Assembly: GCA_052426225.1 (NCBI GenBank)
Contig: JBNJNM010000007.1
Location: 868,001 to 932,000, forward strand
Source of the DNA: Zancudomyces culisetae HAW-14-8
Taxonomy: Eukaryota; Fungi; Kickxellomycota
Direction: 5' to 3'
DNA: 64,000 nucleotides
Below are positions 3,187 to 55,949 of the stretch, one piece after another (position 1 is the first letter of the stretch; each line of letters opens with the position of its first letter). A program made the translations under genes and the position numbers. The notes below the pieces were generated by a model. It was not told where the DNA came from, searched no databases, and was given only the letters and a program-made list of their open reading frames with translations.

Positions 3187-3633
3187 CTACTTTTGTTTTT
3201 TACTTGTATTCAAATGTAGCGAGATTTTCAATGATTTTTTGACTAGTACAGTCAAAAATAATATAAAATGCTCGACAAAAAACAAAACTAATGCCGTGGT
3301 ACGTATATCATAGTCATCCACTGCCATCAAGACTAATCTCACCAGCTTTAAAATTGTAATTAGCATGAGTGGATATACAATATTGCTATGTGAAAAAGTA
3401 CCACTGCTAAAAAAATAACTTATCCATAATAAAATTGCAGCTGTATGTATGATTTGAAACCCCAAATAGTTTTTTATCACAAGTAATACTAAGGCGCTGA
3501 CAAATAAACTACAGTCCACAAAAATGTCGAAAATAAATCCAATAGATTTCCTTGTCCATAAGCCTACTTTTTCGTCTTTGTTGCTATCCACAATATCATT
3601 GTTCTGTGTCAATATATAGAATTGTATCGCCAT
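3187..3633 (-). CDS. Hypothetical multi-pass membrane protein (148 aa, about 4 hydrophobic segments)
   Basis: Intact ATG-started ORF with several long hydrophobic stretches; no family recognised. Confidence 0.5.
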   Translation of the reverse strand: MAIQFYILTQNNDIVDSNKDEKVGLWTRKSIGFIFDIFVDCSLFVSALVLLVIKNYLGFQIIHTAAILLWISYFFSSGTFSHSNIVYPLMLITILKLVRLVLMAVDDYDIRTTALVLFFVEHFILFLTVLVKKSLKISLHLNTSKKQK

Positions 3634-5159
3634 AGTTGATGTATATGTTTACGCTTTAGTATAATAGAATAACTCCTACTGTTTACTTTTTCTGTGTTGA
3701 TTGTTATTAGATTTTAATGTATCAAAAGTAAATAAAGTGAGTTTTATTTTTTGAACCATGTATCAGGTGAAAAACAAATTCGTTTTATACTATTTCTCTG
3801 TATGATGATCATTTAAAAATAAATAAAATATACAAATAAACACATGTACTACCAAAATAGAGTAGGTAATAAATCGTCTGAAGTAAATAAAACTGCTTCC
3901 TAGTTTTGAAATCAGATGAACCGCGCCAGGTTAAAGCTGGATTGATTTTCAAACACTGCAATACCCAGATATCCTTCATTCCCGAAAGTGAAGATGATTA
4001 AATAACTGGAACTGTGTTGTGGTACAATCAACCAGTGGAGCCTAAAACCAATAAAAATCTATTGCAAAAAATGAATCATAAATCTTCAATGTTTTTGTAT
4101 AAAGTGTTTAAGCATTTAGTTCTAACTTCTACAAAGCATAATCAAAGTTTGGTAGGATGTAAATGACAGTCACAAGTAATTGTATAAAGAGAAAGAACAC
4201 GCGCGATCTCACCCACCCTCCTCCAAAACATACCTGCTCAAAAAGGGACTACTTGTGCAATAAAAGAGCCTTTGCGACCCCCAATTTGTCGAATTTCATC
4301 ACGGATCTGATTGGCCCAGAAATGATGATGATTATTATCCAAATTAATTACAAAGAACAACTATAATGACTTAAATCAATCATCGTCTAAGCACAAAGAA
4401 CCCCAATAATTAATATCATCTTAGCACAAAGAGCAAAATAGCTAATTACGTTATTGTACAAAGAACAAAATAATCTGAAGAAATGGATTTTGGTTTAATT
4501 TTATTTTTGTCATTCAGTAGCCAGTTGAAAAAAATAAAAAGGAAAGACAGAGAACATCGGAAACTGGAGAACAGGTGTAATAGGGGACTAAACCCAGCTT
4601 ATAGTTAGTAGTAGTTTTGCTTGTTTTTGGAATAGGAGTATATAGCTTGTAATTAAAATTGACATTTTTAGTAATAAAACATATTTTTTACTACAAATGA
4701 TTCATAATCAGGAGTCGAGCTGAATATTCTGGAGTTTCAATCTCGAATTCCAATTATTTATCCTATAATCGCTATTACAAGAGCTAATAAATGCATAGGT
4801 GGAGTACTACGGTTGTACTACGTGCTTACTGTAGTACTCTATGTATGTAAGAAAATGCCAAAAAAGTATGATAGATTGACTGATAAATACTTGCGATGTA
4901 ATATTATCCTCATTTTATTAGTAGTGAGTTTTCAAATTAAACGCCATACAATGACCTGAATGAGTATTTTTGAAAAGAAATGTAGATGGAATATACATAC
5001 AGCCGGTCTGTCATTCGTTCTTACTTTCAAAAGACTATTTTAAAGGTTTGAATTATCCCAGTAAAGCTATAAACAACAATAGCATATTAATGTAGTCAAT
5101 TATGCTAAAATACAATTTTATACAAAAACATTTACAAAGATACCTTGGCCATTTTTGTC

Positions 5160-5630
5160 ATTACAAGAAATGTTTAATAGAATTGCTATGTTATTCAGTT
5201 TATTATAATACCTTGTACATCAAAATAAAACCTGTAAGCAAAAAAGATGCACAAAACTAATTATTTTGAAACGCAGATAACCGGAATTCTGTCAATAATT
5301 TTCTTTATAAACTGATCAAGATAGTATATCTTAAGATTTATATAATAGTGTTGTATTTTTTGAACCATGTATCTGGTGAAAATCCAACTGGTTATATATT
5401 GTTTCTTGGCAATATAGTTTAACAAAATATAAATTATAAAACATGTGAGGTAAATAAGACTGTTTAATAAACTGTGATGATCAAATTAACGACATCAGTT
5501 GAAAACATGGTTGATTTTCATCTACAATGATGCCCCAATATCTTTCAATCTCAAGAGTGCGAGATGGTTAAGTAAGTGGATGAATTGTGGATTCATTCAA
5601 TCAGCAGAGAACAGAATCAATAAAATTCCA
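5160..5630. repeat. Degenerate tandem copy of the flanks of the 3187-3633 gene
   Basis: 5160-5225 matches 3103-3168 (ACAAGAAATGTTTAATAGAAT...GTTATTCAGTTTATT); 5356-5405 matches 3747-3797 (TTTTTTGAACCATGTATC.GGTGAAAA); 5498-5628 aligns to 3930-4058. Confidence 0.75.
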
Positions 5631-5927
5631 GTAAAAATAAGAATGATACCTCATTGGTTAGTTTTATCATTTCGTATATAAAGATATTTTAGTGCTTGTA
5701 TTTGGATATATTTGGAACATACAAAGTTCCAAATTAAAATTACGTAAAGAATGCTTATTTATACTTTTTTTTATAATACAATAAAACCAAGGGCAATAAA
5801 TAATTATTCCTATGGACAAAAGGGTGAATCAGAGATCTTCAAAGTCAAAAGATTAACCGTAAATCTCAACTGCTTATTCAGTTTGAATCTGATAATCTAC
5901 TTTTATCCGAGAAAAATCAAGAAAATT

Positions 5928-6000
5928 GCTTTGGTGGCTCAGTCGGTAGAGCGTGAGTCTCATAATCTCAAGGTCGTGAGTTCGAACCTCACCCAGAGCA
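5928..6000 (+). tRNA. tRNA-Met(CAU), elongator type
   Basis: Cloverleaf with GCTTTGG/CCAGAGC acceptor stem, anticodon loop CTCATAA, T-loop TTCGAAC, followed by a T-run terminator. Confidence 0.95.
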
Positions 6001-7059
6001 GTTACTTTTTGCTTTTTTTGTTTATCTTTGGTCAAGAAAATAACATTTAATCTTTTATATTATTTCTTTATATATTATTCCATAAGATGTTTTCAAAGAA
6101 GATACATAGTCATGAAATCATGAGTTTTAGTTTTAAACAAAGGAATTTACATTTTGCTGGCAAAAATTGTTTTGGTTCAAGAGAACAATGCAGATGTAAA
6201 AAATGTAATGGATTTCGTGTAAATTGCTCAAGTGGGTACATTATATTATTGGCCTTTAGTTGGGAAAAAAAAGATAGGCAAAAAGTTCAACAAGTTGGAG
6301 GGGGGTGGGGTGGGGATTAGGTAAAGTAGTATGGTAACAAGTACTCGAGTTGGCTTAGTAACTCTATCTGTATGATCCAGATTTATACTGCAGGTATTGC
6401 TGGAGATCAAATAACTTGTGGTGTTTTACCCATGTGATTCAAAAACCTAAAAATCATAGAATTGTTACTTGGAATATTATTGAAAAGGAGTTGAATGCCG
6501 AGAGTTTGAGTATTCCAAGGGTCACCAAGCAAGTTTTTATATTAAGGGGCAAAAAAGGTTTTGTGATACATCTGTCCCTTTGCTTCTCTGCCCACAGTAA
6601 TATTCGCTGGTCACAGCTAACATTCATTGTGGACAAGACCTCCAAGAACACAAGAGATATTGGGGGTTTTTTTATTTTTTTGGAAATATATTATTCCTTC
6701 ATCCATTTAATTTGATTTTTATTATAAATTATTTGGTAATTTATGAGATGGCAAAGAAAAGCAATTTTAATCATGGTGGTGGGGAGGAAGGAGTGAGAGT
6801 AGAGCTGGGATTTGTTTATGGCAATTCACTAAATAACAGAAAATTTTTTTTAGAAAAATATAAACAAATTTTAATGTTTACATTACGATTCGGATTATTC
6901 AAAAAATTGCGCGAAAAAAATTAGTTGGAATACACTTTGGTTTTAAACACAGGACAGAAAAAGTTTAAAAGTACAACAAATATATTGAAGAAAAAACAAG
7001 AAATAAATATAAAAAACAGAGATAGAAGAAAATAAATAACAAGTGTAGGAATTTGTATA

Positions 7060-22728: not shown

Positions 22729-22799
22729 GCGTAGATGGTTTAGTGGTATAATTGCCGCCTGCCACGCGGCAGACCCGGGTTCGATTCCCGGTCTACGCA
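22729..22799 (+). tRNA. tRNA-Gly(GCC)
   Basis: GCGTAGA/TCTACGC acceptor stem, GCCGC-CTGCCAC-GCGGC anticodon arm, CCGGG-TTCGATT-CCCGG T arm. Confidence 0.96.
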
Positions 22800-22804
22800 T
22801 TCGT

Positions 22805-22885
22805 GGGGTGTTGGCGCAATTGGTAGCGCGTTCGTCTCCAATTCGGGATAGCGGAAGGTTAAGTGTTCGAGTCACTTACGTCCCA
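22805..22885 (+). tRNA. tRNA-Trp(CCA) with an 8-nt intron (22842-22849)
   Basis: GGGGTGT/ACGTCCC acceptor stem; CT-CCA-A then TTCGGGAT at the canonical 37/38 site; the intron's third-from-last G can pair with C32; T arm AAGTG-TTCGAGT-CACTT; TTTTT downstream. Confidence 0.88.
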
Positions 22886-23048
22886 TCATTTTTGCCAATT
22901 TGACGCTTTTAAACACTAGCATTGGTGTGTCTAATTAGTATATTTTTTGTACTTTGACTATTCACTAAACTTTTAAACATCTCTAATACAATTACCCATT
23001 ATTGTGAACAATGTAAATTCAAAGTTAGACAAAAAGGGGACTAGCAAA

Positions 23049-32519: not shown

Positions 32520-33230
32520 ACAGGAATCTCGAGCGAATGAGTGATTGGAGTTACCTAAAACATATATATTCTGAGTGTAATTTGAAACTTATGACAATAG
32601 GGAGAATAAGAGCAGGTAGGTTCTGGACAGCAGAGAGGCTGGCAAAACTGGGAATAATAGACGAAAAGTCCAAGACTAGGTGCCCATTTTGCAAAAAAAA
32701 AACAGCGCAGAAACCACTGAACACATGCTACTGGACTGTAAATACTGGTCTGTTGTTAAGTATAAAACTCTGGAACGTATCTCAGATATGTCAATTATAG
32801 GAAGTGAGGAGAAAGGTAGTAGTGAAGGATGGCGAAATTTTTTTTGTAGGGCGACTCCTTGAAGGGGAGTCAAAAAGAATGGTTACTCTCTCCGTTAAGA
32901 AGAGAGAAACCGAAGCACCGTCTTTGGTTGAGCTGGTAACGGCACAATTTTTGGACGGAATATGTCGAACGAGGATGCAAATCTTAGACCGACTTAGATC
33001 AGAAACAACCTCCTTGAACCAACACCCGGTGGGTATGGAGTTCCTAGAGGAACAGGGAGTAATTGGATAGATGGACATTGTGTAGAACTAACTTTTTTTT
33101 GTAGAGTTATGAATATTTAGCTAATAAATTGATTTAAGCATTAAAAAATAGGGCATCGCACCATATCCCATCACCCTACTTAATCTCCTCTAATTTTATC
33201 CCTCCTCCCCCATTGTGAATGAATGAATGA
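32520..33230 (+). mobile_element. 5'-truncated non-LTR retrotransposon (LINE) remnant: C-terminal zf-RVT-like CCHC region plus 3' tail
   Basis: Three overlapping frames join to RIRAGRFWTAERLAKLG...RCPFCKK/NSAETTEHMLLDCKYW... (C-x2-C...H-x4-C); frameshifts at A and T homopolymers; (TGAA)n at 33216-33230. Confidence 0.75.
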
Positions 33231-34334: not shown

Positions 34335-36175
34335 TCTGACTATATGTTAATTGACTGTGTATCTACGCTTGTTGATGAATATAATGCTTTACTATGGAGG
34401 ATAGTATAGTGCAATAAACTATAAAATATTTTTTAGTTTAAAAAAAACGATGCGAATTGGGTGTTAAAATTTAATTAAAGAACGAAGAGCCCTTTGGAGC
34501 TAATATATATTCTTTTTTTTTTCCATGATGTGGTGGGATTGGATATGGTTATAGTTTCTTTCTAAGAAACTTGTGGTTATAATAGGTTTCACGAAACGAG
34601 TAAAAAACTTTGAAATTTTCAAAGAATCCGCCAGTAGGTATTTCACACTCTATTCATTCCTTTCTCCCCTTACTCCCCTCTCAAGAAAAATGTACATGTG
34701 CCAGCAGGGATTTATAATACACTTGGATTAATAAAAGCTTGAATAAAAGATTCTATGGGGTTGTTTCAAAGTTTATCTAATATATTACGTAACTTAAGAT
34801 TTGGGTGGATGGGGTATTTTTTATAATACGGATATGAAGGCTAATAGATACTAAATTCCATCTGTGTAATGATTCTTTTTTTAGTCTTTCTAATTTTAGA
34901 AGCAAGACAATAATACCGACTAGACACTATTCTCGAAAACAAAAACAAAAACCAAAAACCAAAACCCAAATGGTTCGATAATATAATGCATTGCTATGTT
35001 CATATTGGCAGCCCAGTCTAAACGAGCACCAATTTATTACAACCAGCAATATTTACCAGCTTAAATGTAGGATAAGCATGCCAATGACGATGAGATCCAA
35101 AGCGGGTACAGTAAAGGTTATGCTTTTGCAACTACCATTAATTTTAAAAAGCATTGGCTCATACATTGATCTGAAATTATGTACAGCGAGTTTATATACA
35201 TATTATTTACGCAACTATGTTTTACCCAAAACAAAATGGTAGCCAAAATGTATCAACTTGTATACCAACCTTGCAAAATTTAAAAGTGTTTATTTAGTAT
35301 TAAACACAGGATGTTTTCAGTTTGTTCAGCTTTTTTTTAATGGTAGAGATAGGGAATATGGAAATTTCAAATACTAGTCATTCTACCAAACCAATTAAGC
35401 GAGTATCAATACAAATATGCTAAAATAACTAATAACAGACCTACTGACACTGCTCTGCTCGAACTGCGGAAAAAATACCAGATAAATTTAGTTATATAGC
35501 CGGGTCCAATAAATGAATTACACTCAAGTTATAATTAGGGTACCTAAAAATAATAATAATCCATAATCCCAATTTTAATCAATTTCAAATTGAATTAATT
35601 GCAATTCTATAAATGTTATCCATTTAGTATTGTGATAAAATAGAATTGATGAGCAAGCTACATTCATATTAGTATTTCCATAAATGCCAGAACAAAATGA
35701 AAATTAACCACATAAATAGACTTCGTTTAGGATTGCTCATCAAGTATAACAACATAAATAACATAAAAAGCATAAATCGCTTTAGTTCTAAAATTGAAAA
35801 TTTTAAATATTTGGGCTTTGAAAAAATGATAAAACCAGTTAAAAAGCTAGCAGTTATTAAAGTCAAAAAAAATTTTTAATGGCTTAATCAAAAGTAAAAA
35901 AAAATACATATTCTAGTCATGAACACAATCTACAACCGCGAAAAAATGGATTAAATTATATTAGAACAAAAATTTGTTCTATTGTATTGATTCATCTAAA
36001 ATGTACCACACAGCTATGAGGTAAGTATATATATATTAATTTCTGTCGATTAATCTCTTTAGTTTAATTCTAATGTCATATCAATATCCTATAAAAACAT
36101 ATTAACACAGAAACACAGAGAATATATAAAAAATTTGATACATTCTTAAATTTACAAACATTGAGCAAAAAATGT

Positions 36176-36246
36176 GCGTTAGTAGTATAGCGGTAGAATA
36201 GTTGCCTTCCAAGCAATTGGCCCGGGTTCGACTCCCGGCTGACGCA
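36176..36246 (+). tRNA. tRNA-Gly(UCC)
   Basis: GCGTTAG/CTGACGC acceptor stem; GTTGC-CTTCCAA-GCAAT; CCGGG-TTCGACT-CCCGG. Confidence 0.95.
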
Positions 36247-36250
36247 TCTG

Positions 36251-36322
36251 GGTTCTGTGGTCTAGAGGCATGATTCTCCCTTAGGGTGGGAGAGGTCCCG
36301 GGTTCAATTCCCGGCAGAGCCC
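36251..36322 (+). tRNA. tRNA-Pro(AGG)
   Basis: GGTTCTG/CAGAGCC acceptor stem; CTCCC-TTAGGGT-GGGAG; CCGGG-TTCAATT-CCCGG; T-run terminator after it. Confidence 0.95.
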
Positions 36323-36636
36323 TGTCTTTTTGCGTTTTTTATTTTGGTTTATTGTTGCTACGAATATTGGTGCTGCTGATCCTCTGCGTTTGATGGTTGA
36401 TAACATCTTGCGGTATGTTTACACATTTTTTCTAGCTGTGAATTTTATTGATTATAGCACTTATAGGTACATGAGAATTATAGGTTCAAACAGCTATTTA
36501 AACAGAAAAAACACTTTATGAAAAATGTGATAAAGCAATTCAAGTACTTGAACCGAGCCTCAATGATACTAAAAGTAAAGCTCAAGGCCCTGTTTCCACA
36601 CCATATTTTTTTTTTTACGTAGGAAAAATAAAAGTT

Positions 36637-54238: not shown

Positions 54239-55019
54239 TTTTTTTTTGCTACTTTTTGAATTTTTTGTATTTCTTCCACAGCTGTTCCCGCCTTCTTTTT
54301 GTAAAACTCTCACTTTCAAATTACCACCTTCTCAACAAGAACAATTGTCTCTTTTTTTTACCTCGCAAAGTTTGCTTGTAAACTCGTTATTTTTGATATA
54401 TACAAGGAATGTTTCCTGTCTCTACCCCGATGGCTTTTTATTTCCCTTTTATAATCTCTGAATCTTCTAATTTTATTTTACAAGCTATAACAGGATATAA
54501 GATATCTTTAATCCTTTGTTTTGAGTTTAAAAGTTTTTCCTCTCCCTTCTCCCTTATTCCCCCGAATCAACTCAGCATTTGTGCGAATATTTGAAAATTT
54601 GTTAGTTTTCTCATTTATCTAATTGATTGACTAGAGCAAGCCATTAAATGATTTTTTTCCGCAGTCATTTTTTGGGTAGGTATGGCGAATGCTTTTGTTG
54701 CGGGTTTGCTGCGGAACTCGCATGCATTGTTTAACTTTTTCTTTCTTTCAATTTCATTGGCTTCATTCTCATCCACTCCTAAACTTTCCCCCAAAAACAA
54801 ACAGTATTTATATGTGGATTTCCAATTTTAGTAAGCAATAGAATTCAAATCTCAAACAAACAAAAACACTAAAACCGAAAAATAAGAGAAAATCATTAAA
54901 AAGTCTTGGTATGAGGAGAGTGAGGAGAGGAGAGTGAGGAGTGGGGTCGCAACTATCATCATTTTCTTTTAGATCCATTTATTTATTATTAGCATCAGTA
55001 AAAACTAATACAAGAAAAG

Positions 55020-55730
55020 CCCGGTGGCTGCTCACCAGGAAAAAAAAAGCGAGTAGAAAAGGTAACTAACTATGCAAAAATAAATCCTCCCTGACCCTCT
55101 AGGGTCAGCATACCTGTCTAGGTGACCCGAAACTGGATCACTACTCCAGCTCCGGATCCCTAGCTTTCGGCGTTGCGTCAAGTAGTTAGGCTACAAACCA
55201 TATGGCTAATAACGGATGCGTTGTGTGGTCTTTTAGACATCCGAAACGACTTGTAGAACGTTCCCTCAGGACTATCGGAGCGTTCTCATCTACCCCTACT
55301 GGGTAGGAAACAACCAGCATGTCTCTCTACCTGCAGGCTGTACACCCAGAGTCATAACACAGTCGGCCCTAGAGCTTACGGCTTGGCTCTGACTCTGGAC
55401 CGGACTCTTTCATTGTGACTATTTCCTCCTGTACAAGCTGCACTTTCCTGTGATACCGAACCTAAAATCTTAATCTTGTTAAGTATACATAACTACTCTC
55501 TACTCAGTCCAAGGTTTTAGGGACTTATCTCTTTTATTATTACTATCAGATTCGGGTATTTGAATCTGATCCAAACTCGGATTGAAATTGTTTTCAGCTA
55601 TCATAGCTGGTGTGAACTTGTCCAAGTAGAGTTTAGCTGTTTATTACTTACCTCGGATAGTTTTAGTTGTAGATGTTCCTTTACTCAAGCCCCTAAACTA
55701 CGTTAACGCACTGTCCTGTTATGGGCGCAA
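55020..55730 (-). ncRNA. Unassigned large structured non-coding RNA-like element
   Basis: GC-enriched, no ORF of 60 aa or more; more than ten helices found by eye, with long-range ones whose G-U pairs favour the minus strand (see findings). Confidence 0.65.
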
Positions 55731-55949
55731 CTATCACCATGCCGTCGTTAACGTTGAAATTGATGTAAATGCGATGTAGATATAGATGTAGATATAGATA
55801 TTTATTGGTTGGAAAATGCCGTAGTAATTACATCAAGGATTATTTATGACCAGAATTACACTACCAATTCTTTTAATAGACTAAATAAAAAAAATACAGC
55901 TGGAATGGTAAAAAGCTACGAAAAAGCCAAAGTAACATTGTAAACAGGC

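Follow-up and report, generated by a model that had tools for sequence, protein, structure and literature searches.

What is the GC-enriched stretch of DNA that lies between the NADP-GDH and ABC-F genes of Zancudomyces culisetae, and does it represent a gene of the host or a mobile element? The locus is part of a window of 64,000 nucleotides (the whole stretch of DNA that we analysed) from a host assembly of 27 Mb in 25 contigs, with CCCTAA/TTAGGG repeats at contig ends. An earlier note, made from the sequence alone, had described positions 55020-55730 as a GC-enriched island without ORFs and almost fully tiled by helices on the minus strand, and had proposed that it is an orphan RNA, either a large ncRNA with a function or a mobile element that derives from RNA. 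With respect to composition the island is as described: its GC content is 0.46-0.50 over 55000-55400 versus 0.31-0.37 in the flanks, and its longest ORFs measure 41-49 aa, with none above 49 aa. It begins 228 nt past the GDH stop codon and is oriented in the sense of GDH (Table 1). The island is very probably one insertion of a low-copy, old, non-coding family of non-LTR retroposons mobilised by LINEs.

The NADP-GDH protein shows 100% identity to a protein of GCA_001969505.1 (LSSK01), an older assembly of the same species that also has the element, at 99.8% identity; the next relatives of this protein, at 73-75% identity, are found in Smittium, Furculomyces and Coemansia. In the older assembly the GDH-element-ABC-F region is present on two contigs, LSSK01000024.1 and LSSK01000638.1, which over 901 nt differ from the window by two changes, identical in both contigs, and which may reflect a duplicated assembly or two haplotypes. 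As the insertion is carried by both of these contigs, no empty allele is available. At the GDH loci of Smittium megazygosporum, Furculomyces boomerangus (two assemblies) and S. simulii there is neither an ABC-F neighbour nor anything similar to the element.

Table 1. Positions of the element, its parts and the neighbouring genes (window coordinates unless a locus is named)
Feature	Position	Strand	Remarks
NADP-GDH gene	57413-55950	minus	
Direct repeat, 5'-side copy	55723-55740		GGGCGCAACTATCACCAT on plus strand
Whole retroposon copy, 760 nt, longest family member	54963-55722	minus	direct repeats bound both ends
Non-coding head, ~555 nt	55168-55722	minus	contains domain closed by helix (a)
Hairpin (b), 19 bp	55118-55163	minus	base partly kept in four other copies
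LINE ORF2-end homologous segment (last codons and stop)	55069-55142	minus	
ORF2-end hairpin CUGACCC-UAGA-GGGUCAG	55091-55108	minus	
3'-terminal module	54963-55043	minus	83-87% identity with the two shortest copies, C13:1649486 and C13:237863; hairpins 55020-55039 and 54992-55011
A-rich 3' tail, short and impure	54963-54974	minus	AUCUAAAAGAAA; abuts direct repeat
Direct repeat, 3'-side copy, target-site duplication	54945-54962		GGTCGCAACTATCATCAT on plus strand
ABC-F gene	54319-51836	minus	
Conserved ORF2-end RNA structure	L037:6690-6741 (LINE A), L049:8141-8192 (LINE B), window 33027-33078		

Boundaries of the element and its copies in the genome

Two direct repeats of 18 nt, identical at 16/18 positions, are located exactly at the two ends of the element. 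Their 15-nt core matches at 14/15 positions, a value that 0/3000 local shuffles equalled, and the duplicated target sequence would read ATG(A/G)TGATAGTTGCG. On the minus strand (55722 -> 54963) the element terminates in AAUAAAUGGAUCUAAAAGAAA, immediately before the downstream repeat. A-rich tails of a like kind end other copies of the family, in which they are runs of A8-A9, as well as copies of LINE B, one of the resident LINE families considered below. Outside the element, two short perfect tandem duplications flank it at 54913-54940 and 55773-55796, namely (GAGGAGAGTGAGGA)x2 and (GATGTAGATATA)x2. We also considered a MITE in which the long-range helix (a) would supply the terminal inverted repeats; this was rejected, as no duplications flank the ends of that helix and its 5' arm is unique to the window copy.

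At high identity the element occurs once in the genome, and a genome BLAST returned just a 66-nt match of its 3' end, at C13:1649486. A pattern search added the copy at C13:237863, and a covariance model of one head domain gave a weak match (21.9 bits) at C11:848572, a copy that aligns collinearly with ~500 nt of the element, almost without gaps and with 55-67% identity. A two-sequence profile used with nhmmer then found C11:2560930, C11:4970598 and C8:2021236. The genome therefore contains seven family copies, the window copy included, and the six found by BLAST, pattern search, covariance model and profile make the term orphan, used in the earlier note, incorrect; at 55-67% identity the older copies are missed by plain BLAST. 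Identity between the window copy and the others ranges from 55% to 87% over the family.

The family profile spans model positions 2-843 in the window copy. The seven copies start at profile positions 2, ~250, 423, 493, 514, 755 and 777, and all end at 832-843 except C8:2021k, which was aligned just to position 709. A common 3' end combined with varying 5' starts is the pattern of abortive target-primed reverse transcription. The copy at C13:1649486 is flanked by AGAAAATACGC / AGAAAATTCGC (10/11, p 0.03), which lie directly at the truncated 5' end and behind the A-rich tail; the flanking repeat of C13:237863 (9/11, p 0.29) is not significant, and no target-site duplication could be defined for the older copies. 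Five copies reach the junction between head and tail, and all five are collinear across it. An alternative account of the 66 nt held in common, 3'-end cleavage by the spliceosome at a 5' splice site, branch point and AG, was set aside in favour of the truncated copies and target-site duplication, which explain the sharing better. The copy C11:848k has a tandem (GGGATGAGGTC)n expansion within the loop region of hairpin (b) (L057:1800-1860, ~848870). When ORFs were inspected around all copies, no clear pattern of location downstream of genes in sense was seen.

The 3' tail and the resident LINEs

The genome contains hundreds of reverse-transcriptase matches, and there are many intact LINEs with ORF1, APE, RT and zf-RVT. 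Families A and B have a domain set of the L1/Tad1 kind, with a CCHC knuckle in ORF1 and with APE, RT and zf-RVT in ORF2. LINE A, of which many copies are intact, has an ORF1 with a CCHC knuckle, a 1278-aa ORF2 with APE (Exo_endo_phos), RVT_1 and zf-RVT domains, and a poly(A) tail; one LINE A copy in the genome has a 13-nt target-site duplication, which makes the size of the 18-nt duplication around the element typical in this genome. The 3' end of LINE B is present in at least 43 copies genome-wide. One 5'-truncated LINE B copy, 89% identical to the query copy, lies within the window itself (32779-33104, plus strand).

Homology between the element and these LINEs is found at the 3' end. The segment 55069-55142 reads in frame as VIQFRVT*TGMLTLEGQGGFIFA*, where LINE B has LNQRPVGMESLEGRRGIG* and LINE A has LNQCPSGTETLESRRGIG*. 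When the element was compared with the LINE B tail by blastn, two collinear matches were obtained, one at the ORF2-end motif (E 0.014) and one at the 3' terminus (E 0.037). The ORF2-end hairpin of the element is the counterpart of the GACUC/GAGUC hairpin of LINE A and the GUCCC/GGGAC hairpin of LINE B. When LINE A, LINE B and the family copies are compared, 4/7 tested pairs of this hairpin, all in its 5-bp core, change on both sides yet stay paired. Its covariation score is 0.30, as compared with 0.14 or less in slid controls, and since 30/500 shuffles reach the same score the support is moderate.

The element thus resembles LINE A and LINE B in its ORF2-end peptide and hairpin, in a 3' terminus of the form AAUAAAU..AUCUAA followed by As, in its folding z-score and in the size of its target-site duplication. 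It differs from them in that the LINEs are protein-coding up to the motif, whereas the element has neither an ORF nor similarity to them upstream of it. The 5' ends of the element and LINE A are unrelated, and the idea that the element is an internal-deletion derivative of LINE A was rejected. An autonomous LINE with exactly the tail of the element was not found in the genome.

The last ~20 ORF2 codons of both LINE A and LINE B, families that are 37% identical, form a closing stem, a GCCC..GGG mini-hairpin and a CUAGAG hairpin (Table 1). The compensatory changes in the CUAGAG hairpin indicate an RNA structure that is overprinted on the ORF2 coding sequence. A structured module at the end of ORF2 that is common to two LINE families and the element could plausibly serve the reverse transcriptase as a recognition signal. 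In locus L049 a truncated LINE B copy is directly preceded, in sense, by an ORF of 1192 aa (3468-7046) with many GYPTVAPTTG-type repeats, which is probably a Thr/Pro-rich wall protein; the element in the window likewise lies downstream of a gene in sense, in this case GDH.

Folding and distribution of the head

The minus strand of 55020-55730 folds with an energy of -225 kcal/mol and a z-score of -4.98 against dinucleotide shuffles, versus -2.79 for the plus strand, and the 760-nt element gives -3.7 on the minus strand and -1.7 on the plus strand. The assignment of the structure to the minus strand in the earlier note is thus borne out, and the comparison with dinucleotide shuffles that it had proposed comes out clearly in favour of a fold. 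Taken separately, the head gives a z-score of -3.9 and the tail -4.7 against dinucleotide shuffles; as controls, flanking GDH coding sequence gave -0.3 (+0.4 in another run) and intergenic DNA +0.5. The minimum free energy (MFE) structure of the minus strand includes helix (a), in which 55710-55692 pairs with 55190-55174 (-22.3 kcal/mol as a duplex; 0.4% of 500 shuffles are as good), hairpin (b), helix (c), in which 55442-55430 pairs with 55344-55332 and encloses CCAGAGUCA/UGACUCUGG, and local hairpins at 55545-55570, 55255-55286, 55213-55243, 55091-55108 and 55020-55039. The tiling by helices that had been described holds for (a), (b), (c) and most of the local hairpins. It does not hold for helix (d), an alternative pairing that is absent from the MFE structure, or for the 308-nt 3' half of the head, which by itself has a z-score of -0.4, no better than shuffles, so that part of the tiling is ordinary.

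The last 760 nt of LINE A and of LINE B have z-scores of -4.0 and -5.1, respectively, which is the range of the element. Since the 3' regions of these LINEs are equally structured, a strong fold is a property of these retroelement ends and not a sign of a cellular ncRNA.

Conservation of the structure was examined among the copies. In an alignment of three tails, substitutions of C-G to U-G and of U-G to U-A keep the two 3' hairpins paired on the minus strand only. In the older copies folding does not exceed that of shuffles (z 0 to +1), and of those base pairs in the fold of the window copy that are hit by substitutions in the C11 copy ~40% stay paired, which by our own estimate is about chance level. 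From five copies RNAalifold obtained a consensus of weak energy that retains just a short closing stem and the hairpin (b) base. Because the older copies lack excess folding, the one structure demonstrated to be conserved across the family is the ORF2-end hairpin, joined with weak support by the base of hairpin (b), and all other structure is documented from the window copy alone. A compensatory version of helix (a) that had been seen by eye in the C11:848k copy was discarded, given a duplex p of 0.34 and no homology to the 5' 250 nt.

No solo copy of the head was found in the genome by BLAST, covariance model or profile, with the assembled rDNA units included in the search, and an origin from the rDNA spacer was rejected because the assembled rDNA units do not match. 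None of the other copies has a homologue of the first ~250 nt of the head, a stretch to which the 5' strand of helix (a) belongs. As this part is unique to the window copy, the full-length element is not definable, and the head could partly be unrelated sequence.

Rfam searches of 4 kb and of the head alone, on both strands at E<=10, gave no matching family, in agreement with the earlier note, in which the diagnostic motifs of a set of known RNAs had not been found. What was returned was noise: outside the island there were matches to snoZ182, XIST_intron and snoU83B, and the plus strand gave a 15-bit match to snoU30. In the element neither a tRNA, a 5S RNA nor an SRP RNA was found by Rfam at E<=10, ARAGORN found none, and there is no recognisable Pol III promoter; with no head derived from tRNA, 5S or 7SL, the element is not a SINE in the strict sense. 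Two linked tRNA pairs with a spacing of 1-5 nt, Gly(GCC)-Trp(CCA) and Gly(UCC)-Pro(AGG), are present in the window at 22729-22887 and 36175-36323 (plus strand) and look like dicistronic tRNA units.

Mobilisation, precedents and alternative readings

In the mechanism that we propose, the RNA of the element would be read from the minus strand, in the same sense as GDH, and the endonuclease and reverse transcriptase of a resident LINE would copy it into the chromosome by target-primed reverse transcription. Such a process would leave the 18-nt target-site duplication, the short A-rich tail and mostly 5'-truncated copies. The element is made up of a ~200-nt tail, LINE-like over its 3' ~150 nt, and a ~555-nt structured head without coding capacity. 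In the tail, the final codons of ORF2 and the hairpin that they form are followed by a U-rich 3' UTR with two more hairpins and by the terminus AAUAAAU..AUCUAA(A)n. The tail is presumably the part recognised by the LINE protein, and its structure may be the recognition signal; the particular LINE that mobilised the element is a matter of inference, as is the idea that the window copy is or was near the transcribed master. Of the two possibilities that the earlier note had left side by side, the mobile element is therefore the one upheld, by the target-site duplication, the A-rich tail, the truncated copies and the LINE-like 3' module, and nothing supports a free-standing cellular ncRNA gene. 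The island belongs to an established kind of element, the non-autonomous retroposon mobilised by LINEs, of which it is a previously unannotated member, and it is not a new class of cellular RNA.

LINE/SINE pairs of the stringent type have a common structured 3' tail that is recognised by the LINE reverse transcriptase. The element is like a SINE in being non-autonomous and in having a LINE-homologous 3' tail with hairpins, target-site duplications, an A-rich end and 5' truncation. It is unlike one in its length, which at 760 nt or more exceeds the usual, in its very low copy number and in the lack of a tRNA, 5S or 7SL head. The chimeric retrocopies of the U6/L1 type in mammals, which arise by template switching during LINE reverse transcription (PMC2104539), also consist of a structured RNA followed by a 5'-truncated LINE 3' end, with direct repeats flanking the whole; the 5' part of the element, however, matches no identifiable cellular RNA gene in the genome.

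By analogy, the closest described precedent is MINE (Mixed Interspersed Nuclear Elements) of Magnaporthe grisea, in which the ncRNA WEIRD is joined to a 5'-truncated MGL LINE and flanked by repeats of 10-20 bp (PMC2104539). WEIRD is 1.1 kb long, no solo gene for it was found in the Magnaporthe genome, and its full-length part is carried by ~31 MINE copies (PMC2104539). Many MINE chimeras are transcribed, and WEIRD RNA is expressed at a level comparable to that of a housekeeping gene (PMC2104539). Shared by MINE and the element are the joining of a 5' ncRNA to an equally oriented LINE 3' end, direct repeats, the failure to find a solo gene for the 5' RNA, and a fungal host. In the element, by contrast, the LINE part is short (~150-200 nt) and the copies are few and mostly old. 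A further difference concerns the independent fusions of the MINE type, since the junction is not variable among the five copies of the element that reach it. The same continuity of head and tail in these longer copies indicates one fused element that then spread, and not repeated template switches.

It is conceivable, although unlikely, that the window copy is derived from a retroposon and yet still active, either as a transcribed master or as a co-opted 3'-end or terminator element or ncRNA downstream of GDH. This copy is the longest and the sole one with preserved structure, the ages of the family members differ widely (55% to 87% identity) and thereby imply long-lasting activity of the lineage, and a location in sense 228 nt after the GDH stop makes read-through transcription plausible; many of the Magnaporthe MINE chimeras are, as noted above, transcribed (PMC2104539). 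Against this, no promoter was identified, and the flanking repeats have already diverged at 2/18 positions. Distinctly unlikely is a more specific possibility, in which a structured ncRNA comparable to WEIRD would parasitise LINEs by mimicking the structure at the end of ORF2, and the window copy would be its live master or would descend from it by domestication. If this were true, it would mean that an early-diverging fungus harbours a Pol II-type, non-SINE, structure-guided parasite of LINEs, whose head RNA would have a function of its own.

Could the element instead derive simply by 5' truncation from an autonomous LINE that belongs to a third family, with a head that is nothing but the decayed C-terminal coding region of ORF2? 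In its favour, codons of the ORF2 end are present in the tail together with an in-frame stop, LINEs are as a rule 5'-truncated, and the degree of structure in the element is matched by the 3' coding regions of LINE A and LINE B. However, when 55143-55722 was compared in three frames with the C-terminal ends of ORF2 in LINE A and LINE B the scores remained at shuffle level (p 0.4-0.9), as against 410 in the control comparison of A with B, and the C11 copy likewise showed no similarity to the LINE ORF2 C-terminus. Each sense frame of the head contains 11-18 stops. Since the flanking repeats differ at only 2/18 positions and the helices are nearly perfect, there has been little decay since insertion, and stops in every frame despite so little decay suggest that the head was already non-coding when it was inserted. 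No intact LINE with the tail of the element is present in the genome, and an origin from such a third family appears quite improbable.

A free-standing gene for a cellular ncRNA, be it telomerase RNA, an RNase P/MRP-like RNA or another class, with the repeats and look-alike copies being incidental, is very improbable: a strong strand-specific structure, a domain closed by a terminal helix, a locus between two housekeeping genes and the fact that no Rfam family accounts for the island would all suit such a gene, but the 5'-truncation series of seven copies, their LINE-homologous 3' ends, the significant target-site duplication, the lack of a telomerase template, the location of the RNase P and MRP genes elsewhere and the finding of nothing similar at the GDH loci of four related genomes all argue against it. 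The template of telomerase RNA needs at least ~1.5 telomere repeats, and neither strand of the element has a 7-, 8- or 9-mer of the CCCTAA/TTAGGG repeat, so that it contains no template. In RNase P and MRP RNAs, CR-I and CR-V form helix P4. Two segments of the element, GAAAGAGUCCGG / UUUCGGAU, resembled CR-I/CR-V; their fit to the consensus is poor, RF00009 and RF00030 are silent at E<=10, and the genes are elsewhere. A candidate RNase MRP RNA was found at C13:1135469-1135851 (L013; 92 bits), and a 214-nt RNase P RNA with canonical CR-I/CR-V (28.8 bits) at both C19:137295-137508 and C21:2466180-2466393 (L009, L010). The loci on C19 and C21 have identical scores and a second weak match 1.1 kb off in each, and the pair may represent a duplicated segment or two assembled haplotypes. 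A group II intron was dismissed as well, there being no Rfam group II match at E<=10 on either strand and no ORF for a reverse transcriptase or maturase.

Reading the island as an insertion of a LINE-mobilised retroposon removes a false candidate for a new class of large ncRNA. The family to which it belongs is too diverged for BLAST-based repeat masking, and its annotation needs a profile. At the same time, a non-autonomous, LINE-dependent retroposon family is documented in the genome of a zoopagomycete (Harpellales).
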